This document shows, piece by piece, positions 8,869 through 29,800 of a DNA stretch of 64,000 nucleotides. The stretch is from assembly GCF_002113885.1 (NCBI RefSeq), contig NW_018404492.1, positions 4,187,609-4,251,608 on the forward strand, written 5' to 3'. The notes beneath the pieces are model-generated. The model was not told where the DNA came from. It saw only the letters and a list, made by a program, of their open reading frames with translations, and made no database searches. A program made the translations under genes and the position numbers. This stretch comes from Mizuhopecten yessoensis (taxonomy: Eukaryota). Position 1 is the stretch's first letter, and every line of letters starts with the position of its first letter.

Positions 8869-11800
8869 GTAAGTAGTACATATTTAGACTTCCATACGTT
8901 CATTGATTCTTGTGCTTTCTTCATTTCTTCAATTAATTAAGAAATCTGGGCAGCAGAATGTAAACAATTTAATAATGAAACTCGACAACTGGGAATGTCA
9001 AAGACGATGTACTCATTATTCGTTTGTAGGTTTACATACACTTATACACTATCACAACAAATGTATTGTAACATCTTCTGTTTCCAGAGTTCATGATACC
9101 CTTCTTTTTCTGTTATATTATCTCCTTGGGTACTTTTCTTAGGTATTTTTGTAACTAAATGCTTTTTTTGTCCTGTTAGGTTATAAATCATGATAGAACA
9201 AAACAAATGTACTGATAAAAATGTTACTAGAAAAACGTAGTGAGGAGAAAAGTTACTTAAAGGGTAGTTTGTCAACACAGATCAACATTTTATGCACCAA
9301 ATGGCCATTTCGTCGTTTATGGAAAAACTAGTGGTACTACATGAGAATTCAAAAGAATAAAGAAAAAACATGTCTTTAGAGATCGGAACTTACGAAGAAC
9401 ATTGCGAAATGAGGAAAGTGCATTCGAAACTTTTCATCACGTTGCAATGTTTTGATTTTTTTTCTTCTAATTATTGTTTTCTTCACAGTTTGAAATGCTA
9501 ATACAATACGTCAAATGTGAGAATCCTAGTAAAAAACATCAATGATTAAAATCTCAGCAAAACAAATGATATGTTAGGACTCTAGACTAAACTCGAGGTC
9601 ATCCAGCAAGAACAACAACCTTGTTACCTACTGGCCTACTGCACTAGATACAGTGTACAAAAAGTACGTGCAAGATGTAATACCAACTCATTATCCATAC
9701 ATGTTATTTAGTTCTGGCTGACGTCTCATCTTTTGAAAAAGTGTAGGTAACCTCTAAGATTGGTTCTGTGGGGGAGTGAACAGAAACAATTCTGATTTCC
9801 CATAGGAATCTAAAGTGCTTTGTTCGTGCAAGGTATACAATGTAATTATTTCTTACTCAAACAATTTAGGAGCATTGCTGCATTGTGTCTATTCGATATG
9901 TATCTGGCACATTGTCTGCTAGACATGCTTTCCAAATGTCATCCGAGGTCAAGCCCCCAACTGAATTGCCACATATTGTAATGATGAAATACGTGCATTA
10001 AGGTAGCAAACACGTTTTCTGGTAAATGTTCGATTTCACACATTCACCTATATCAAAAATTCCGTAAAAGCTTAACTTACTAACCCGGAATGTTTAAAGG
10101 ATAAATCAACAATATGGATACATATCAGTATGTAGTGTACTTTGCGTTCTAGGGTAATACAGGATGTGAGGGGAATGACAGTGAAGTAAATAGGAACTTC
10201 AGACTACGATAGATTATACACCGATAACAGTGACAGAGGATCAAGGAGTAATTTGCTTTTCTGCCCTGCTTTGGCAGATGGAGCAAAAACTCTGACCCGT
10301 TTTAACAAATACATTTGCCTTGTTGCACTTAGATCCGGCAAAAACATTGCTAAACTATTTACATTGATAGTATGGACCTGTGCTCCAAATGCTTTGAATG
10401 CTTTTTCGCCAAATATGGTATCGTTGTAATGAGATATATGACCTTTGCTGCAAAGGCTATGTCTTCAATGTTTTGCTGTCAACTAGCGTCAATTAGCTGA
10501 AGGAGGAAACACAAATGTTTACACGCTAGTAATCAATGTACTGTAATGTCTATATCAAATTGAACATGGCAAATACTCTCTTTGAGCTAGCAAATAAATT
10601 CAAGTTCCTTCCATGTTTGACGTTACTAGCTACAATGCTTTGTAATTTGGTAAAACTTCTATGCAAACGTGCATATATGATAATAATAATAATGATGATA
10701 ATATTTTGAGTTTCTTATACACCGCTTTATCACAATCTTGTTCGTAGGTCGTCTCAAAGCGGTTAAAAATGTATTATTCTTTGTTATAGGACCACATAAT
10801 ATACATGTGAGTAAAGCTCAAAAACATCGTTTAAAGTTATATGTATAATGTTTAAAATATTGATTATCCAGCGCAAACACTTGTTGTAACCTATAGAAAG
10901 CATGTCAAAAAATTGTTTTTTATCAATGTGTTAAATGTGAATATCCAGAAGTTTGACATGTTTTTTCCCATGCCGTACTATCATCCTTGTCAACTTATAT
11001 GGACCTTAGCAGAATCAACATTTTTCTTTTTGTCTTGTCCGCTTGATGGACATTAAAACAAACAAAGTATCCTCCTCCTTCGCCATTTGCAAAAGCTTGG
11101 ATATGTATCGTACCTTTCTACATCTGTCCTACTATGTCTTCCTCGGAAACATCTACCGTTCACCTCTTTTCTGTTTCGTAGCCATTCATAACATTATTTT
11201 GTTGGTGTTCCTTGAGCTACGCTGTAATATAATATCAAACCACCTTTGTTGGGATTCAGACGGTTTTTGAGGGCAGGAACATGTTCAACGCAGTATTGTA
11301 AGGACATACTTTTCCCTTCCTTCTAGACAATATCATTATATCTGAAGAGGATATTAAAGATTAACTGTGTTTACTTAATGATAAAAAAAACGTCCTGGCC
11401 CAGATGGCATGATACACAAGATAATAAAGAAATTAGCACCTTCTCTAATATGTCCTTTAACTTTACTTTGTGATAAGACTATTGAATCTGGTATTATACC
11501 TCTTTCATGGAAAACAGCTAATTTTAATGCAATAAAATACAAAGGTAAGGGTGCTCAAAATGATGTCTCTAACTATAGGCCAATATCTACTACATCATCT
11601 TTTAGCAAAATTGTTGAAAAAAATTTATTTAAATATATGTTTAATTATATGAAAGAATGGGATATCATAACGAAACACCAATCAGGCTTCTTACCAAGAG
11701 ACTCGACTGTAAACCAGTTATTTTCTATATATGACACTATTGTAAATAACTTGGGTCAAAATAATGAAATCAGATTTGTATTTTGTGATGTAAGTAAGGC

Positions 11801-14800
11801 GTTTGATAGAGGGGTTTTATTCAACTTTTAAGCATGTCAAATCCGGTGTACCACAAAGCTCGGTCCTTGGTCCATTTATTTTCTTAATCTATATTAATGA
11901 TATAACAGAATGTGTAACAAGTAAAATAAAACTTTTTGCATATGATACTTCTCTCTATGAAGTAATATACATCAATCAAAATGAAATTGCAGTGAAATTA
12001 AATAATGATCTAGGTAATATTAATGCATGGGCAACAAAATGGGATATCAAATTTAATTCACTAAAGAAGGAATCTGTAATCTTCTCGAGGAAAATGGAAC
12101 AAAATCATCTTATTTGGTAATGAAACTTTAACTAATAAACAAACTCATAATCATGTTGGTTAAACTTTTAGTAATGATGGGAAATGGACACATCATATTG
12201 ACAATATTTATGAGCTAGCTTATAAAAGAATTAATATATTGAGAATGTTAAAACACAAATTGGATAAGAAAAGTCTTATAACAATATATACCTCTTTTAT
12301 TAGACCAATTGTTGAATATGGGGATGTAGAATGGGATAACTGTAGTAACCAAAATAAAAATACTCTTGAGTCAATCCAGCTAGAGGCATTAAGAATTATT
12401 ACAGGATTACGTAGAGGGACCTCTCATTGTAAGCTTTATGCAGAAACTGGACTTGAATCACATTGTTGTAGGCGAAAAAATCATAAATTAGCACTTATGT
12501 TCAAAATTTGAAATAATGAATCGCCTAAGTACTTATAAGACATCATTGAATCATACCTTCTCAGCAATATAAATGTAAGATACCCACTAAGAAATAGCCG
12601 TATTTTCAATCCCCATTTCTGTAGAAGTGAGATTTATTTCAATAGTTATTTTCCCTCAATGTGTAGAGAATTTAACCTTATATCTACAGAAACATTAAAA
12701 GCTACTTCCCTTCAACAATTTAAAAATTTCATCAAATCTGATAATATGAACAATACTGAAGAAATTGCTAGCACATCTAAATACTATGGGCCAAGAAAAT
12801 TCAATATCATAATTTGTCAGCTGAGACATCATGCTAGCAACCTAAATAGTGACTTATATATGGATCATCTGAATGACACATCAGCATGTAGATGTGGACA
12901 TGAAAATGAAAATGCATTTAATTTTATATTTGAATGCCCACTCTATAACAACTTTAGAATGCAACTAGTAATACAAAATTCTCAATTTGGTATATCTGGT
13001 AATCATGATCATTTAAATCTAAAAACTCTATTAAAGGGATGCTTAATATGCAGCGCTGATATTAAGATATCCATTTTACAAAGTATCTCTGACTACATTT
13101 GTCAAACTAATAGGCTTGATATGTAATCTCAATCACAGCAAAACTTTACATTGCAAGTGATGCTATTATTTATAGTGTCATGATCACTCTGCTAATAAGT
13201 ATTGATACTGGTGTATATCTATCTTCACAACATCTCTGGTTTTGTTAAATAAATTTTAGGAGAATCAACTCCAATAATATACATGTATATTAATAATAAC
13301 TACATTTTCCTATATGAATCCATATCATATTCTGAAATTTTAAACAATGTTTATTTCTTGGTAACTTATCCTATATATCGAGTGGGTGGATGGTCAATGT
13401 GTTTGTACACAGGGACTTTTGGGCCTGTATCCCTTGGATTTTATGTAGGATGGGTTTTCAATAAATATACATGTTTTATTTAATTGTTAATATCTAAAAC
13501 ATAAACAGAAAATGATTTAAAAAAAGTTGTAAAATGTTCATTTCACAAGCTGAATTGGAGTTATCTCCCCTGTACTGTTTAATTGGATTGTTATGACAGA
13601 ATATATGTAATGTTTGTAATTAAGTTTGGAAAGGACTTGAATAGGTCTAGCCTGATGTCCAATCCAATTGACATATATAAAGTCAATACAATCTGATGAA
13701 ATGAAATAAGGATATCGAATATGTATGAATTTTTTAAGTTTGTCATTGTTTGGCTATTACAAATGTAACACCTGTAGCATGTTCCACATATATATAACTT
13801 ACGTAAGATACGTAAGAATCAAGGGCACGTTGGGCTATATTTAACACACCAGTATACAGAACCAGCAGGCCGGAATTAGTTTCCCTCGCTCTTTATATGA
13901 GAACTTACTTTAATGACATGTCTGAGGTGCAACATGCATTCTTCTACTGGAATACTTCAAGGGGCATAACTCCTATCAAAGAAGCGCTGCATTGAACTTT
14001 GCCGCGATTCATTGAACAACAAATAGTAAATTGAATAGATTTGTTATCGTTAAGATATCAGAGATAGTATTGCTACAAAATTATTATGATTTATTTAGCT
14101 GATAACCTACTGATGTTATCCATGTGCGTCACAAATTAAAGCGAGCTGTATCCGTCATTTGTAACAAAACAAAAGTGCAGATTTTTCATTGAAATTAAAG
14201 ATGTAACGCGTTATATCTTCAAACAACCGATACAAATGGTATAATTTCCGCGATTGCGAATTTGTAACCGACAATTTAGGAATAAAGTACGTGTAGGTTT
14301 ACTCATTTACATTATATCAGTTACAAGTAACCAATATTGAAGTTTGTCATCATGTCACCGAGTTGGTCACTCATTTAAATTAGTCTAATTAGTCTACAAC
14401 GTCATCTGTACTTGTTGATTGTATCGTGCTTTATCATGCGCTAAAACGGCATAAAAGTAGTTGTAAAAAGCGCATCAAAGGAAGTCATCGTTAAAGAACT
14501 ACTAGTATAACACTTTAAAACATATTCCGATTTCAACATAATGGATTAAGTTCCCCTGTCACCTTAGCCGGGAAATATGCCTTAAAACATACGCACGGCA
14601 GCGAACGCCTCACTTAAGATAGTCAAATATGATTATCCTAATAATAGCCGGGGTGGGGGAGGTTCGACCCTGTTTGTCTTATGAATGTCATCATTTATTT
14701 GCGATATTCGAGAGACGATATTTAGGGGGCGGCAGTGAGGGAATGGTGAGTGTAAAATTGCGTAAATATACATATACGAGTGTACCATGTGTGACTGCAT

Positions 14801-17800: not shown

Positions 17801-20800
17801 ATAAACATAATTTTCAATATGGCCCTGATGGCCTCCTTGTATGTGTAAAACTGTTTTTAAACTGATAATTTATAATAAAACGTATACAATGGTTAATCTG
17901 CACCTCTATAGATTGAAATCAGGGAAAGACCTATGCAATACGGCCCTGTCACATATTACTGTATTTCCCACCCTTGCAACTTCAAAACATGCCATGATTT
18001 CAACATCAAAAGTAGATTTAAGCCGCACCGGTTGGAAACACGGGCAATTGATCTAAAGTTCAACAGGTTACATGCTGATGCTTAGAACATGTTCTGTGGT
18101 GGAGATTCAATGTGGACATATACACTCAATAGGTGTAACAGCTATTTTTATTCTCTATGAAAATGCATATAACATTTGAGAGTGAAGATGAGAGTATCTG
18201 GTTATTTTAAAATCCACTCGAATTAAATGGGAATGTTGACACAGGCAATAATAATGCAGTCCACACTGTACATGAATACATACAATGTACATGTATAATC
18301 ATGAAATATCATCTGGAATTGCACAATGTCACGTAAGGTTTTAAAAGACCACTGGTACCGTTGGAGATATCATTAAAGATGTTTGGTCCCAGTCGTCTAA
18401 ATCACAGGCATGCGTCTACGATGACTATGGTTGACAAACAATTACTTATAATTCGTCGGGAACAAACTTGATAACAGTTGCCGTAAATTAAGAACGAAAG
18501 AAAGAATCCTTAATCAGCTTAAAAACCTACCCTTATACGTCTTGTTGTTCTGACATTTAACATTGGCCTTCTGTTGATGGTTGTGCCCTTTTTAAGCTCA
18601 AACAGAACCTTTGTTCAAATCGTTTTGCCCTAAAATACTTGGTTGTTATTTTTGCAATTGTTATTGCTATCATTTCGTTCGATATTGTGCCATCCCTGCG
18701 TCACCACTGCCTTCTCAAATTACAATATTGTGTTTTAGGAAAGCCTTTGCCTCCATGCTGCTCTATCGTTTGGCAAAGACTTCCATTATGTAACTATCTG
18801 TTAGGTGTTTAAAAATTATGTAATCAATAAACATGAGATACTTGTTGTCAAGTTGTATTATAATAGCAAGACAAAATAAACATATGATCATTATAGAAGA
18901 AATAATAATAGATTATATTTATCATGGAAAACGAATGATGTTGAGGACTTCTTGCATCTCATTCATCTTCCAATACTTTTAATTATGCATTCAACGATAA
19001 AAAATATCATTTAGCTTCAGAACTTCACATTTACCTTATAATCATGCCACTGCCAAACTCTATGACAATCGTGACGACCTCAGCTCCTAAGTCGTAAAAT
19101 GCATTATCCTAATTAGCTAATTAGCTCCTTCTTTAGAATACATGTGTAACAGTGCTGTCAAAATCAGGATGTTCATGATAGATGCTTCCTGTTGATAAAG
19201 TAAATAAACCATTTATCCATGTATTTTATCAAAGAGGCTTTAATCTTTAATAGCCTGACTGTTTATGTTGGTTGTTTTCTTTTCGTATCAATTTCTATAT
19301 AACATTGCTGGAATAAAAATATGATATACGATTGGCATCTACATGATGATGGTCTTAAAGAAACTGCATACTGCCTTTTTTTGTAGATGGAATCGCTTCT
19401 AAATCTGCAGTATGGATCTATCAGATACTGTCGTACTGATCATACATGTTACTGAGGTTGCGTTGACTTCGACTGTGTTAGAAAGGCGTTGATGGTTCTA
19501 TTTCTCCTTATATGCATATTTTCTTTACATTGCAGGTGATCTGGCGCCGGACGGCAGATCCCAATCCACTATCAATAGGCAACACTGTGTTTGTGGCAGA
19601 CGATCGGTATCACGTCAACTATATAGACTACAGAGTTCAGTGGGATTTATACATCAAAAACGTCAGTCGAAAAGACGCAGGCCTTTACGAATGTCAAGTC
19701 AGCTCGCGAGAACGAAATATACGACGAGTTGTTTTCTTAACGGTAATAGGTACGTCTTAAATGATTTTTTTAAAAGTTTCTTTTTTTCAATCTAGAAGTG
19801 TTCAATAATACGAGGGCCATACCATACATTTTGTCACTATTGTCAGGAGTCACATGCATGTTGTATATAACTTTCTACTACAATCCTTCGAAGTATCCCC
19901 CTTAGCATATACGCACTTTTACAATCGTGCTGTCCATGACGTAAACGCTGTGCGGTAGTCTCCCCTCGATATACTGATAAAACACTGAAAGGTTCCACGA
20001 TCAAGAGCACACCTAGAGGCGTTTTCAAGAGCGCGTTCTTGGTAGTAAGATAAACAGGAGAAAGTCATAGGGACTTAAATCGTGTGAATAGTGTGCCTGG
20101 CAAACAGTACTAGTTTCTCCTGCTACAAACACACTTGTACACTATCGCTTTTGTAGGATGAAGCATTGTCGTGCATTAACTCGATGTCATTCAACCCTTT
20201 CATGTATAAAATTGGCAGGCTTCAGAACTTCGTCTCTGTAAAATTTGGTAGTGATAGTGTCCCCTTCTTTGCGCAGTATATTGTAGTACATTTCAAACGT
20301 TTAGGCGTTTGGTCAGATGTCAGCGAAAGGGGGATTCATCGGGCACAGAACTTTTTTAGTATCAAGTCGTTGTAAAAATATGATGTGAGCCTAGCATCTT
20401 TCTTAATTATTTCTTTCACATCAGCAATGTTTTTCTTTGATGCTGCAACAACTGGCCTGTCTGGCCGTGTGTCCTCTTTGATGTTAACGTTACTATTCTT
20501 GAATTTGTATACTCATATGAAAACAGTTGACATTGCGACTGAAGATGTGCCTTTTATGCACAGCTCTGTAGGTACAATGTATCCGTTTTGGCAGTATGTG
20601 TAAAAAAAAAAACGTGTTTTGATATAGAAACGGTTTTTTTTAGTCTCAACCTTCATTTTAGCATTGAAAAGAAGCCACTAGTCATGAAGGCATACCATTC
20701 AATAATGAATAAGTTGGATTCAATGCAACTTCCAAATGTAACCTGTTTCGACATTGCCTGTGCGTATGATTTTGCGAAGGGAGATAACTATATTGTCATA

Positions 20801-23800
20801 ATTATACAAAGATACCACTTGATGAGATTTTACACTTTAATTGACACTACAAAAGAAATTATTCAAACAAACAAAAACGATCTGTAAGCAAAATATTATC
20901 AGCTCACGGTTGCTAGCGGTAGTCACAAGTCATGTACTGCCCTAGAGAGTCCCCATCCAGCTACCCGTTTTGCCTCATGTGTCAGTATCAACCCCCGATT
21001 CAAATCGAAAACAACGTAGATCCAACTGGTCCCGTCTTATATGAAACGTAGTCGAATAGCTAACTGCCATATCAAATTGTTTCGTCCTACAAGCCTCGTC
21101 TGGTTTCCTATCTAATTCGACATTCAATTACTGCAGCCACACATTCCAAAAGATGCAGAACCTTGAAATTTAACTGCTCTCCACTTCGACCTAGTAAAAA
21201 GAAGGCTGCCGTAGACTCGCAGTTGAGCCTGCGCACCGCGTCTAGACATTATTCTTCCGCGATGACGCATCAGAAAATTTAATAATTGATGAATTCGTTA
21301 ACAAAACATAAATATGACATTTTAAATATGGCTTTGTGTTTTGTTTCTACATAATTTGGCTGTATTGAACTATCAAGGTACAGCATCATGTTGTATTATG
21401 ATCCTTCAATGACGGACTATATTGTTTCACATTAGGTTAATACGTAGACTTGCACAAGCTCCAGAACCTGGAACAAACTATCAAAATGGACTTCACAAGT
21501 ACTAATTATTGAGAGAGAAAAACACGTTGATTGATATATAAGGTTTGAATCTTGCTTTGGTCGATTTCATGGGGTGATGAATTGTGTTGGTCTTGAAACA
21601 AATTAGTTCATGTTGAATTTGTTTCAAGACCAACTCAATTCATTACCCCATGAAATCGACCAATCCTTCAATAACATGTTCAATTCGAGTCGGATAATGT
21701 CGAAATTTGGCACGTGCATTGCTTTCATTTTTTAATCATTTTGCAGTTTGCCAAAGCTCTAAACTATTTTATCACCAATTCGTATGGGAGCTGATTGATG
21801 ACAAAATTCATTAAGTTCATTACATCCTATATGTATATATACTGTTTTACACCACTGTTTGCATACAATTGTTACAAAACCTTGCAGGTTCGGGTACAGA
21901 ATAGGTCTACGGCATACCAATTCATGTTATTATCAGAGGCGACTAAATTGGGCATCTATAAACAGGGCGGATTTCTTCTAGGTGATATGTAAAGGGGCGT
22001 TAAAAAAACCAAGATCGATTTTCCACCTCGATCGCAGCACTTAGAATCTACATCTTTTCTTTTCTAACTTCTGCCCTCTTTTCTTTCGACGGTGTCCCTC
22101 CGTCTATATGTGACCAGAACAAATCTAACAAAATAGCTTACTACCATTATCGACACATAAGGATGTTTTGTTCTGTACCTTGAAATCGTTACCTGTATCA
22201 AAGTCATTGTTGTTTTTGTACACAGACTTAAACCAAACATGAGCTTTATGTATATGCGGTAAATGAGAATATGAAAAATAAAAATAATGGTTCTATAAAA
22301 TTCATATTGTTCAAAGATATTTGCTCAAATTATGTACCACTCCATATTTTGCAGTGTTCTTAGCTAATGTACAAACATTCACGTGCTTGTTCCATAATAA
22401 GTGTTGCCAGCACTATTCCCCTAAGTTTTACGAGTATATATATACCGTAATGTAGTAAAGCAGTTTATTGATGTTTACCGTACAACTTTGCAAAACACTA
22501 AAATGTTAAATGTATAAATACTTCAAAAACTAAACGTTAAATTTGTTATGCCTCAAACGTTGCATTCTGTCATGTCACGTTACATTGTTTTTACTGTTGC
22601 ATTTCTGGAAGTGAGCATTGGCCCAACGCGCATTATGCAGTGAAACCAATACACTAGACAGACAACGGACGCGCAAATGATTATTTAAATTTCACTTTAG
22701 AAATGGTTTAGACAATTTGAAACGAAAACCCGATTTATAAAACGCAGTTTCAAGCGTCGATATGACCGAACACCATGCCAGATATCCTTGGGGGCAAACT
22801 TTAGACGCGTGTTTCTCGGTTTCTGCTGACTATTAATCAATGGCTGTGGTCCAAAGTGAGGGCTCCGTGTGAGCAGGCGTCTAGTTTTTTTTACGACAGG
22901 GATTTATTCACAGTGGAAAGCATCTTTGACCATTTTCCAAACTTCTACAGTTTAATGGAAATGGACCGCCTCAATATCGCACAACTACGATATACTTGAT
23001 AGTCTTGAAAGAGACTCAGTAGGTGTTTGAGAGCATTTGTCTCACGCAGGCTAGTGTTATGAATTTATAATCTGTTATATTATAGCCGCTGCGTTACCCA
23101 AAGATGTATGTGCTCGGTCATATGAAGTGGATCGGGACATGTGTTGAGTTCCGTCGTGCATGTATTAATTCTATTTTAGGTGATACCTAACAGTTCTATT
23201 ATATCTATTATCAAGCTTTTTGATATCTACCTTTTACCTAATATCTTACGAATTGCGATAACTAATATCGTATCCCTAACACCACACTGGCAGATATTTA
23301 CTGTATACATGCACACGGGTAGAAATTAACCTTATACCTTAGAGCAGGTTGACATTTACCTCAAACTTAACATCGGTTTGATTGATATTTACCTCATACA
23401 AATGTACCTACGTCATATATGTACTACATTAGTAAATATTTACCTTATAACAACGCAATGTAACACCATGATGGTTGACATTTACCTTATACATGTAGCT
23501 ACGTCATACTTGTACCACACTAGTGAACATTTACCTTATACCTAACACCACTATGCATGTTGACATTTACCTTATAACTAACACCACTATGCATGTTGAC
23601 ATTTACCTTATACCTAAAACCATAATGGTTGACATCAACCTCATACTTACATGTAAAACTACAATTGCCGATATTTACCTTTTACCTAGCACCAACCTGG
23701 CCGACATTCACCTTACACCTTTATTATCTAGCATCGCTCTGGAAGAAGTACAAAACGTAAAAGCGGAAATGACTGTTGCAAGACCTTTTACCATTACGGA

Positions 23801-26800
23801 TCCTTTCTTAGTCCATAACATAGTTATCTAGCTGCAAGATAAATATGTTGTTTTGTTAGATAAGGGTTCACTAATCCGTCACAAGCGGTATCTAAAGCAG
23901 GTAAGGCTTTTCTATATACTGAATAAAACATTCTCTAATCGACTTACTGTCAACTGAAGATTGTGGCAGACTCCGACACTGGTGATTGTGGCTCATTTTC
24001 ATGTAAGAACGGTGTCCACTTCCAATAGAACCACAACAAAAGCAGTGTATAGATAAAGTTGGGCTAATTTAAAGCTCAAAACTACAAATACACAAATTCA
24101 AATGATAGGGGATAATGTTTCGTCAAAATGTAGCGTGGTGTTCAAAATATTTCCACAAAACGTTTAAAAGGCACTGATACTCACCGCTTTTTCTCAAGAA
24201 GATTGTTTCACGATATTCTGAATGAAAGTGCCTCTGATCTTTCAATAACATGTAGCGAGATTTTTCTACCGAAAAGGCTCATCGTTCATGTCCGTTAAGT
24301 AATGGTTTGGTGGAAACATCTACTTCATTTTATAATTTAATGTATCTTTGTCTGTCATGGTTTTATGATATCTCACTTTGTCTTAGAACTGTAACCAAGT
24401 TACTGTCCTGGATTCGTTAAGATACGTCCTGGCCAGATGCCAATACATAGACAGCTATGATTGTATCTTAATGTGTTGACACTTTGGCTTTAATTCCACT
24501 TCCCGTCGTTATGATTTATAAAATTTTGCTAATGTATTGTACGAATTTTTACATTGATGTATTTAATATGTAAATGTATGCAAATATGTTGTTAAGTTTG
24601 TCTACTGTACAAGACATGTTAAGGAAACGTCCTTTGTCGATGTAGCAGTGTGTTGGTGACGTGGTATCGGCGTGTACATTATCCCAAGCCACGAGACAGG
24701 GCGGTGTAAGGATACTTAAAGAGTCCGGGATGACAGGCATAGATACGATAATGTACATGTAGCTTACTGATGTATATAAAACGTGGTTAACGAACGGTTT
24801 AACAACAAATGTTTAGAGTTGTTAGCTCTCGTATGCTATACTGTATATATACAAGTGCAACATCGTGTTGTTGTTTTTTGTTTTACTCAAAATTAAATCA
24901 GCTGGATCATTTTGAAATCACTACAAGTTTTTTTATGCTTGTCATTATCTAAATTTGTTAGGAATATTTGCACTGTACTCGACTGAATACTTCGGCATAT
25001 TTTCAGGCAGTGCATGGTTTTGCAATTCTGCAATAAGATCTGTACCGGTTTAGTGTTGTACTCCTCAGTAGAAATATAGATACATGTATTTACCCATACA
25101 TTATAAGTTGTTTTCAGTTTGTTTAGTTTTGAATCTAACCACCTTCTCTTACAGTGACTTGTTTTAGTTTAATGCAAGCGGTATATTTTGTCTTCATTAT
25201 GCGTTGCACACGTACTTTAATACGCCTGTTTGTTACAACCCATTAAGAAAGACAAAACATATTGTTTTTACCTTAATTAATCGATCAACAACATGTAAAG
25301 TGTACACCTCCGCGAAGCCGCGGTCGACAGTTGGTACCTTAGTAAGATTAGCACATTTATAATTCAGAGCACGAAACGACAATGGCTGTTGGAAATGCAT
25401 GTCTTTTTACAGCAAATGTGCCTTCATTTAAAAACCATTATATCAGTACAACGACATTTGAATTTTCCTGTTTAAACAGTGCACAGTTATACAGAGGCTT
25501 TATGCTTTCGTTCATGTTACCACGTAGTTAATAGTATAGTCCTATTAACAGCTATGCTAATTAAAGGACGTGCCTCGATGTTTGTAATGCATTCGTGTAT
25601 TTGCTTCCTTTTTTGTTTTACAATGCTACCGTACCGAAACACCATACTAACGGTACCAAACACAGTATATCACCCAGTCAAATAAAACTGGTATCCGGCT
25701 TAACTGTTGTAGCGAATACCTTAATTCTGAACGTGTAGCAAGGAGTAACAACTAGCATTTAAAGTACTTTCGTATGTCCCTGTCTATGGACAGAACCTGT
25801 TGCCGTTTCTATTTAGGCGATTGTTAAACACTGACGCAAAGTTTGAGATATTGCTAAGCAAGACGCTTCGAGACGAAAAACGTGCTCTATAAGTTATGTT
25901 TTTTATAAAGATCCCGAATGTTGCAGCAGGTTATTTTTGGTCGCTTTTCTCCTTCAAATTCTGCAGAAGGTTTCCACTTTACAACATGCAATTGGTTCCA
26001 GCAGGTATATTATTTCCCTAATACTGATCCTGACGAGGTTGAACGAAAACAAACCTCACCTTGGGCATTTGTGCAATAGATATGGTTAAGCCACTCACTA
26101 ATTTTGGTTCATTGTATTTTGGTATTGTGGTGTGTTCTCTCAGTGTCTTAATCAAGTATTATGATGCATTTGGTAACTTTGTCTTAACTGTACATTTTGG
26201 TACCATGAAGTGTTAGTTTTTTTCGTTTTTGATACTCTGTAGTATTCAATTCTGTGAGTTTTGTATTGATAAAGTGTGTCAACCTTCTGTGAGTTTTTGA
26301 TTCATATAGTGTGCCAGTGATTTGTGTTTCTGCACCGTTTTATGTCGTGTTTGATTGTTATGGTTTTTGTAGGAATTTGTACTCTATCATCATTTGGTAG
26401 CATATGTTTTATGTTGATTCCAATTGTACATTCAAAAATGTCGATGTTATAGGAAGAGATAGCGGAATTTAAATTTTCCCTCGCTGGTCGCCCTGGGAGT
26501 TGCACCGTTACCACACACGCGAGGGAGACCATCGTACTTCCGGCGTTCATGTTACAATAGCTCATTCAGCCTACCTTTATAGCCACTAACACTTGTACAA
26601 AGAAATCTGAGATTAGAAATCATTTCCGTTTATCGTTAATTCCATTGTTAAGTGTAAGAAAATGGTATCCGATGACATCCAAGTTTCCTGACACTGCTGC
26701 TGTTGTAGTCGTTTGTTCATTGAAAGGGTTTCTCACGGTCTTACGACATGAAATCAACAAGTTAATGAACTCATACATGTTAATGAACATGATGATGTTG

Positions 26801-29800
26801 CAGTAACACCTAATTTTGACCAGGAAAGCGTAAATTGGGGTGTATAGACAATAACATGCATAACAGTTGAAGTCCTTATATGAAACAAATATATCATTAA
26901 TTTCGTTGTATTTAATTTACGCTAATGGAATGCATAAATAACATGTTTTCATGGAAATACTTATATAAACATTACCACACAGGTAGATTGATATGTTCAT
27001 TGTCTGTCATTTCAGAACCACCAGCAACGAGTCCAAAGCCGACATCTAAACCAAGTGAGTAATTATCCTGCCTGTAAACATACTTTTTATAAATACCAAA
27101 AATATCATACTACCCGTTTTTCTTGTAACCATTATCCATTTTTCCGTTTCATATGACATTGCTCTTATTACATGATTGACACAATTAAGTTAATTCATAA
27201 CACTTTTGTTTTTAAAAAAAATCCTATCCGCATGTGTTTCGCTTCATTATCAGTTATAAAATAACCTTTAAATACAATGAGTATATCATGCTGTACCCCA
27301 TATCAGAATATATTTTACCCTGACAGATACGATTTAAAGTAAAAAGGAAATTATGAAATTTTCTTATAATATTCCCAAAATGATATATGCTTTGCTTGCC
27401 ATGTTAATTCAAATCTGATATGATTGAAAAGGTTGCCAATAAGCTCTTGAATATTTCAATATAGTATCTGAATTTTCTAAGCGTTTTGATCGGAAGCTAC
27501 ACTTTAAATTTCATTATCTTAAGTTAAATTTGATCCATCTGGTCAATATATAACGAATAAACATAGATACATGGATGAAAATATGACAGAAAGATATGTA
27601 ACAACTCATTAGTTTGGGATATTTGTGAAGTGAAAACATATTTTTTCCCCGGACGTGTTGTATCCCATTGTTTAGTTTTTTTTCTATTTTGTTTTCCATT
27701 TAAGCAACGTACGTTGTATTCGTTTACACAAGTAACATTAACTTTCCTGAACACTAAGAAACCTCAGAATGGTGTCAGCTAGTCTGACTTAATCAATCGG
27801 CCTGATGTATTTATTTTATTATAAGAAATAGATCGAGTAACTATAGGTATTTGTGTTAACTCTAGTGAGTATGAACAACTCTAAATTACCTGATGTCCAT
27901 TTAACACCAGGGGTGTGCACACATGACTAAGTTCTTCTTTGATCACTGAAATACGTACATTTCTTAAAATCAACGAATTCGCCATTTGTCCCAGAGTAAA
28001 TAGAAATCATTTAAGTTTCGATATCATTACTGACATATAATCAGCTTAAATTTATAAATCTAAAACTGATTCGATTATATTCTGGCAAAGCAAATGTAAT
28101 CAGGAAAGTGTTTTTTTGCCTTGTCAAAGAAAAAAGTAGAGTTTAACAGAGTGTGAAGAAAATGCTTTTAATACTCTAACCTAGAATACCAGTGTTCGCC
28201 AAAGAGACAAAGATTTCTGGGGGCGGACATACGGGGTCTAGTGGGAACTAAATGTCATGTGTAAGAGAAGGCTTTCTGGGGAGACAACTCTGTGTCGTGT
28301 CATCAGTAACGTTTCGCGCTCAAAAGAGGTTTTTTTCTTCTCGTCTCTTCATCCTGTGTATAAATAACTCGTTTATTGCAATGACCAATTTTTGCGTTAA
28401 AAGTAAGACTTACAGCCATGTTGTTAATTGTAATAAAATGAAGTTTATATCATATTTGAGTGTTAATGATGAATAACTAAATAATATGACAGAATCGATC
28501 TCGATAGCTACCGATATGATTGAGCAGACCATTATAACAAATACGGTTTTATTGCAATAATACATGATTGAAATAAATGGGTGCACATCAAATTGCTATA
28601 TTGTTTGATAATTTTGATTTATATTTTGGCTAACATTATGGGATGCATAACCACTCACGACACACACCAGACATACATGTATTTATTTGGGTAGAGGTTT
28701 TTATACATGTGTGTAGCATGTTAACATACCTATACTGTTCCTGTCTCTAGTCCAGTAAGTAGTGTTTCGCTTTCAACTGGTAATTGGCCTTAAATTGAAG
28801 TACATGTAACAGTAGCTAATCGCTTGTTTATCATAGCCAACTGCTTTTCACTGTACGAAAGGATACAAACAATGTTGTAGTCTTAAACCTGTATTAAAAA
28901 TACAGTACATAAATATATTACTAATATAGCTCAACTATAGCTGGACTATGAAGCATGTACATGACATTCTGCTCAAATATATAAGGACCTCCACATATCC
29001 AATTCTGTTAGCCGAAATATCAATCAAACTATCGAAGAATATAGTAATTGTATGTGCATAACTCTGTTTCAATAATATTGATTCCACAGTAGATGGTTCT
29101 GAATTTGATGAAAATTCAGGTTGTGTTCCATTAATGTAATAAGGTACACTAAATTGTTGTGTATCAAAACGTAGGCACATATGTATTCATATTAAATCAC
29201 TTTAATGTAGACTAGAATAATAATAAAGAAAGTTTTGAAACATGTAGCTTTGACAAAAAGAGGTCATTTGTTATTTTGGTCCCACAGTTTCCTCCCATTT
29301 ATATCATGATGACCTTACTCTTATGACATTTCATGACGGCAAGGTCACTTGACTTAGGCAAAATAAAATCGTATCGGTGATAGCCACCAAGAGGCCGAAA
29401 TGGATACCCCTCCTTTGTGTATTGAAAATCGATATACCAGTTTAATCAAAAGTTGTATAGTAGTATAGGACGCATGTTTAACATGTAAGACGGTTTGGAA
29501 AAAAAACGTAGAATGACCATTCAAGACGTGATATTTTAGGACAGGGTTTGTTATGCCATTAAAACAATACATGCTCGCAAGAACTTGTTCAATCATCCCA
29601 TTTTACAGATACAGCATTGGCGGTCAAGTCGTGTATAAGAAATGCATAATAGTACATGAATATGTCATTGAAGGCTTGTGTATAAGGCAATGCAAGGGGA
29701 TGCATGTAATGGGTAGTAGTGTATGAGGCCCATTAAGGTGCTATACACATATTATGGGGATGGCGTACTGTATGACGCCCCTCAAGAGTATACAGTTTTT

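Follow-up and report, generated by a model that had tools for sequence, protein, structure and literature searches.

The 64-kb stretch analysed here (the window) is AT-rich animal DNA with a GC content of about 35% and holds at 23222–23735 a degenerate, single-copy minisatellite of 14 units, each 29–51 bp long, delimited by a fuzzy scan with the unit core (here and below, features are given without strand unless one is stated). The units start at 23222, 23258, 23293, 23322, 23351, 23384, 23435, 23477, 23526, 23562, 23598, 23631, 23670 and 23703 and measure, in the same order, 36, 35, 29, 29, 33, 51, 42, 49, 36, 36, 33, 39, 33 and 33 bp, so that the succession of 33, 39 and 33 bp from the starts 23598, 23631, 23670 and 23703, on which the original prediction was built, was reproduced by the core scan. 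TRF recovered only the best-kept part of the array (23527–23622, period 36, 2.7 copies, 95% matches), and both approaches found head-to-tail units within the 10–100 bp that define a minisatellite. When searched against the genome, a 988-Mb assembly in 82,659 contigs, the array matched nothing but itself, as expected of a single copy; it is an old single-copy minisatellite with a period of roughly 33 bp. A 102-aa open frame (23523–23831, + strand) extends over the last five array units, whose lengths (36, 36, 33, 39 and 33 bp) are all divisible by three, continues for about 100 bp past them, and encodes repeats like VDIYLIPNTTMH; since the upstream units break the frame, it is probably a side effect of repeating, in frame, a unit that lacks stop codons.

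Two interspersed repeats at lower coordinates served as families for an indel test. The first is a 5′-truncated LINE (11306–13709, + strand) with a reverse-transcriptase frame and an ATGAA-type repeat tail, represented by 30 copies of 84–96% identity, and the second is a repeat of about 950 bp with an inverted-repeat end (20711–21663), represented by 30 copies of 77–86% identity. The word that links the array to these repeats is TACATGTA, which is perfectly palindromic and ranks first among the non-simple 8-mers of the window; it occurs there 31 times, with all flanks different, as compared to 3.4–9.8 occurrences expected under Markov orders 1–4. The 31 occurrences were not significantly clustered (8 spacings below 350 bp vs. 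about 4.7 expected). The array itself contains two copies in 514 bp, where a local density of 0.4 per kb would predict about 0.2 (Poisson P about 0.02), a figure that carries little weight because the array was chosen post hoc. Counting similar words, four or five TACATGTA-like motifs fall within a 260-bp part of the array, much more densely than in the genome at large; the unit may be a hot target, or some of the motifs may be copies made by duplication of sub-units and of higher-order segments.

Insertions within the array and their alleles

The 39-bp unit (23631–23669), which reads ...CTCATACTTACATGTAAAACTAC, carries TACATGTA at 23648–23655. It had been proposed to differ from its neighbours by exactly six extra bases at a TA, and this was borne out: when CATGTA (23650–23655, at the TA of ...ACT-TA-AAAC) is taken out, a unit of 33 bp is restored that aligns gap-free with the neighbouring unit 23598 at 24 of 33 positions. 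The placements TACATG and ACATGT are equivalent to CATGTA, and every equally parsimonious placement of the gap implies one substitution (a C/G mismatch for TTACAT, a C/T mismatch for TACATG, ACATGT or CATGTA). Slippage or tandem duplication as the origin of these six bases can be ruled out, as they are identical to the adjacent six at no more than three positions. Moreover, the insertion occupies a different TA of the unit from those used in the long units described below, which makes it independent of the other motifs of the array. Close to it, at 23636, all four individuals compared below have T and the reference has C; T is closer to the unit consensus (GACATT...), and the reference base is either a private allele or an error.

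The second unit invoked by the original prediction, of 49 bp (23477–23525), is one of two "long" units. It has TACATGTA at 23490–23497, with the extra CATGTA at 23492–23497 (...CTTA-TA-GCTA), and a second motif with one mismatch, TACTTGTA, at 23507–23514, while its 51-bp paralogue (23384–23434) has TACAAATGTA at 23397–23406 and TATATGTA at 23416–23423. The predicted reading cttaTA[CATGTA]gcta is real, but its comparison with the 33–36-bp units was incomplete: the unit exceeds these by 13–16 bp, so that CATGTA accounts for only part of its excess, and the proper comparator is the long unit 23384. Once CATGTA is removed, unit 23477 measures 43 bp and aligns gap-free with the empty allele of unit 23384 at 35 of 43 positions. 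The same CATGTA shares four of its six bases with the preceding CTTATA.

Each long unit has two motif sites, in two TCATA-motif-C segments, the second of which (23416 and 23507) is probably older and was copied along with the unit. The units that follow 23384 and 23477 both begin with AA where other units have GA, pointing to a duplication that spanned about 90 bp, and it is possible that some motifs of the array are of common ancestry. The view that the TACATGTA of unit 23477 was simply inherited within a 16-bp block common to unit 23384 was revised, as an empty TA allele exists in the latter.

This allele emerged from the comparison, over 21700–27699, of contigs of four individuals from four studies. 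TACATGTA at 23490 and at 23648 was present in all four individuals with no indel, and these two sites are therefore not assembly artefacts. The site at 23397 in unit 23384 segregates for an 8-bp difference, TA-CAAATG-TA (TACAAATGTA) vs. TA, which is unpolarised: the reference reads ctcaTA[CAAATGTA]cctacg, X14 and X15 read ctcaTAcctacg (the empty allele ctcaTAccta), and both alleles occur in X19, a heterozygote (records 26 and 27). The empty TA state predicted for the site homologous to 23490 was thus found, exactly, as an allele at 23397. The segregating TACAAATGTA differs from TACATGTA by two extra bases (AA) placed exactly at the CA|TG junction. In the same unit, the SNP 23418 T>C turns TATATGTA (23416) into a perfect TACATGTA in three of the four individuals, the same three in which the 8 bp are absent. 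Outside the array, the TACATGTA at 25081–25088 is wholly absent in X15 (8 bp left out at 25080, record 24); the short allele, AGA|TTT, retains no TA and is accompanied by C>A at 25094. This difference, unpolarised as well, is outside the simple 6-bp scheme, and both segregating cases (23397 and 25081) are differences of 8 bp, not 6 bp. No allele still holding an element at the motif sites was seen in the four individuals over these 6 kb.

Two further features of the same contigs were recorded. A 16-bp deletion (23959–23974) segregates in X19 and X15; the deleted segment starts with GATTGTGGC, nine bases that are repeated 9 bp past its end, and it looks like an ordinary slippage-type indel. At 25539–25581, each of the four individuals showed a summed contig depth close to 10,000 over a segment of roughly 43 bp (gtcctattaacagctatgctaattaaaggacgtgcctcgat), as compared to about 13 around it, with many contigs diverging on either side; the segment seems to be the core of a short and very abundant repeat.

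The units of the array are 60–80% alike and the segments bearing the motifs are themselves duplicated; the array alone is therefore weak evidence, and its insertion events are not all independent. Its proposed role as an internal control for insertion stands as far as the allelic empty site at 23397 is concerned, but is weaker than had been claimed, the comparison between units being insufficient by itself.

Private insertions in dispersed repeats and abundance of the word

Material independent of the array came from the two interspersed repeats, for which 30 copies per family were compared by all-against-all BLAST and insertions were kept when at least five other copies were without them. This gave 157 private insertions in both families together, ten of them of 6 bp. 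Four of these ten (L020, L033, L043 and L048, classed by eye) are clean conversions of TA into TACATGTA, with the insertion at a TA and TA on both sides of the extra bases, and L061 is a messy case. As for the others, L047 produced CACATGTA at a TA, L054 is an exact tandem duplication (6/6) and L042 a near-exact one (5/6), while L038 and L049 remain unexplained, with three to four of six bases matching the neighbouring six. Each private insertion of the TACATGTA type is absent from at least 20 paralogous copies, which represent the empty state. Besides the 6-bp events, the LINE copy of the window carries a private 9-bp insertion, CATGTA + TAT (13282–13290), that creates the TACATGTA at 13280–13287 and is not found in 23 other copies, and L008 is another private insertion creating the word (six bases minus one).

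In well-aligned copies of these elements, all five occurrences of TACATGTA coincide with private insertions of at least 5 bp, vs. 119 of 101,302 8-mer positions (0.12%), and none of the five is ancestral or derived from substitution. The original prediction had called for counts of CATGTA at TA in transposable element copies: in two families, TA was converted into TACATGTA in four to five of ten private 6-bp insertions. Of the two findings that would have spoken against it, neither was obtained: slippage does not account for the extra bases, and among insertions of 6 bp CATGTA is not uncommon. There is good support for an origin of TACATGTA by insertion of 6 bp at a TA, and it comes mainly from data outside the array together with the allelic empty site within it.

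The abundance of the word extends beyond the window. In 166 kb, comprising the window and locus flanks, 67 copies were counted vs. 13.1 expected (z = 21), and TACATGTA was the sole outlier of the 256 TA-N4-TA words in this sample. TACA-N1-TGTA words were mildly enriched, while the Sleeping-Beauty-type 7-mers TACAGTA and TACTGTA showed no enrichment in the 166-kb sample. TAGAGCTCTA, considered as a second footprint palindrome, was discarded, as it belongs to the LINE upstream region and its flanks are shared. In the whole genome TACATGTA occurs 199,406 times, as compared to 94,922, 87,527 and 58,173 for the composition-matched palindromes ATGTACAT, TGTATACA and ACATATGT, respectively; the genome-wide excess is hence 2–3.4-fold, below the ten-fold suggested by the window. 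By rough estimate, the word becomes denser with sequence age, from about 0.04 per kb in the LINE copies, the younger of the two families, through 0.18 per kb in the older one to 0.4 per kb in unique DNA, as would be expected of scars that accumulate by a steady process and decay by point mutation.

The bases on either side of TACATGTA show a symmetric bias, with T in 52% (A in 11%) of cases at +1, a purine in 65% at +2 and A/T in 88% at +3, and all three positions deviate from generic contexts of TA or TGTA (P = 7e-6, 8e-3 and 2e-6, respectively). The consensus of Tc1 insertion is AYATATRT/CAYATATRTG (PMC9635669), and the flanks of TACATGTA agree with it (AYA-TA-TRT).

Probable transposon excision and the alternatives

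Transposons of the Tc1/mariner type insert only at TA, duplicate it, and have their non-transferred strand cut 2–3 nt inside the element (PMC2170065), and the footprints left by excision and non-homologous end joining correspond to the 3′ overhangs (PMC7827188). On this basis, a cut-and-paste element of Tc1/mariner type would first integrate at a TA and duplicate it. At excision the transposase would cleave each non-transferred strand 2 nt within the element, so that the donor flanks would keep the 3′ overhangs ...TA-CA and TG-TA, and end joining would then fill and ligate the overhangs into TACATGTA, with occasional junction variants such as the extra AA. An element with 5′-CA...TG-3′ ends and a 2-nt stagger is indeed predicted to leave the scar TA-CA-TG-TA. 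On this reading, some TA dinucleotides of the array each gained a short insertion and now read TA-CA(n)TG-TA. Units 23631 and 23477 received CATGTA, unit 23384 received CAAATGTA, and an older insertion was probably copied into both long units (23416 and 23507). These would be local instances of a genome-wide insertional mutation from TA to TACATGTA. In the 42-bp unit (23435–23476), nine extra bases (AACGCAATG) lie directly before a TA and end in ...ATG-TA; that they are an imprecise scar keeping only the right half (TGTA) is speculative. Overall, we regard TACATGTA, in the array and in the genome, as probably the excision footprint of a Tc1/mariner-type transposon. A former element at the sites, its CA...TG ends and its 2-nt stagger are what we infer, from the fit to the known Tc1/mariner mechanism and to the target consensus rather than from an identified element.

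The closest parallel is offered by the Tc1 and Tc3 footprints of Caenorhabditis elegans (2-nt stagger), where the TA target is likewise duplicated and the extra bases between the TAs consist of two nucleotides from each end, here presumably those of CA...TG (PMC2170065). Junction variants from end joining and AYATATRT flanks are also common to both (PMC9635669). In contrast to the nematode elements, the scars described here are fixed and segregating germline variants at roughly 2 × 10^5 sites and no element is tied to them. The ends of Tc1 and Tc3 read CAGT... Sleeping Beauty belongs to the same superfamily and follows the same repair logic (PMC7827188), but its canonical footprint, TAC(A/T)GTA from 3-nt overhangs, adds 5 bp and yields a 7-mer, unlike the 6-bp addition observed here; as TACAGTA and TACTGTA are not enriched, an element ending in CAG with a 3-nt stagger is not the main source. 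Short palindromic additions at repaired excision sites are known too as the P nucleotides of hairpin-forming transposases (hAT, Transib/RAG and MULE; PMC5499845), which nevertheless are inverted copies of the local flank, vary from site to site and accompany target duplications of 5–9 bp, whereas the word added here does not vary and the duplicated target is TA. The mechanism is already known, and what is new is the genome-wide scale and the segregating alleles; in the literature searched, we found no paper that ties TACATGTA to transposon footprints.

Transposases of the appropriate type are present in the genome, where 835 candidates for the Tc1-type DDE_3 domain (PF13358) were counted; 150 were scored and all 150 were above the cut-off, many with open frames of 300–400 aa. 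An element with TA|CA...TG|TA ends was not found among the loci and DNA examined. The only Tc1-like family with readable ends among the loci examined (L063:1131-2335 and L064:822-2343) has terminal inverted repeats of 31–36 bp (...TATACTAGCGGAAAAGAGAAACTGTGCATGC) embedded in (TA)n, and transposase frames that are open over 368 and 317 aa, respectively, so that it may be recently active. It was ruled out as the source, as its ends, (TA)nCTAGCGG, predict a scar other than TACATGTA. The locus L062:1464-2454 (− strand) has a DDE_3-bearing frame that is intact over 330 aa, with no terminal inverted repeats detectable within 1.4 kb on either side, and may represent a domesticated or decayed Tc1-like gene. 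When 320 kb were scanned de novo for pairs of terminal inverted repeats flanked by TA, one TA|CATGCATT... candidate emerged, in L028, which was rejected for being internal to the long terminal inverted repeat of a larger, abundant MITE. This MITE-like repeat (L028:3080-3470; 504 first-look candidates) has inverted repeats of about 80 bp and interrupts or truncates a LINE copy. No Tc1 remnants were found by tblastn in the DNA sampled, and a private 195-bp insert in a copy of the second repeat family (L059:2152-2348), with inverted ends CAGGGGTTCGTTACAAATGTCTG, is a hAT-like MITE and not the source.

The uniformity of the inserted word, the outcome of this search among the loci examined and the intact transposase locus without terminal inverted repeats (L062) are all points in favour of a sequence-specific process other than excision that writes CATG and a duplicated TA at TA sites, whether through a domesticated transposase or nuclease whose staggered breaks at TA are filled in with a fixed sequence or through the abortive integration of tiny end-to-end products. 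We consider such a process unlikely, as the known chemistry of Tc1/mariner elements already predicts TA + 2 nt + 2 nt + TA (PMC2170065, PMC7827188), the flanks obey the Tc1 integration consensus (PMC9635669) and, the search having been of limited reach, a missing source element means little. It is distinctly unlikely, in our judgement, that the constant CATGTA at TA stems not from excision but from a site-specific process not described so far, still active and responsible for palindromes on the order of 10^5, for instance a domesticated Tc1-like transposase devoid of terminal inverted repeats that would break the DNA at TA, the gap then being filled with the same four nucleotides each time.

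Ordinary minisatellite dynamics, i.e., slippage, sub-unit duplication and substitution, could also have shaped the array, in which case its likeness to TACATGTA would be coincidental or due to one inherited motif and the array would be no independent evidence. Heterogeneous unit lengths in a tandem array, here spanning 29–51 bp, are what slippage produces; the paralogy of the long units, each with its AA-type follower and the duplication of roughly 90 bp that this suggests, and the two TCATA-motif-C segments per long unit imply that at least some motifs were probably copied, and the 4/6 identity of the CATGTA of unit 23477 to the bases before it goes in the same direction. Yet the insertion of unit 23631, lying at another TA, was not inherited from the long units and is no copy of its neighbours, the empty state at 23397 consists of TA and nothing else, the filled one differs from the motif at 23490 by an extra AA, and the same word, not copied from adjacent sequence, is inserted genome-wide in unrelated, non-repetitive contexts. 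As an account of the extra bases of the array, these dynamics are thus quite improbable. It is very improbable that TACATGTA is common because it is a selected functional motif, such as a transcription-factor half-site with a CATG core; a perfect palindrome ranking first among the non-simple 8-mers of the window would suit this role, but selection leaves unexplained the fixed 6-bp insertion origin in dead LINE and repeat copies, the rise in density with sequence age and the presence/absence alleles in a non-coding repeat. An assembly or sequencing artefact deserves hardly any credence: nothing was found in its favour, and for the two TACATGTA of the array it is refuted by their presence in contigs of four individuals from four independent studies.

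The conversion of TA into TACATGTA is a sequence-specific mutational signature: it adds in-frame 6-bp insertions, creates perfect palindromes around a CATG core and makes repeats such as this minisatellite more variable in length. From the two repeat families, scars can be roughly estimated to accumulate at 1–2 per 1000 point substitutions, and some still segregate. If they derive from excision, as we consider probable, TACATGTA would constitute a countable fossil record of cut-and-paste transposition that is independent of surviving element copies, amounting to about 2 × 10^5 sites in total and roughly 10^5 above matched controls, and the past and present activity of DNA transposons in a bivalve would be measurable from indels alone.
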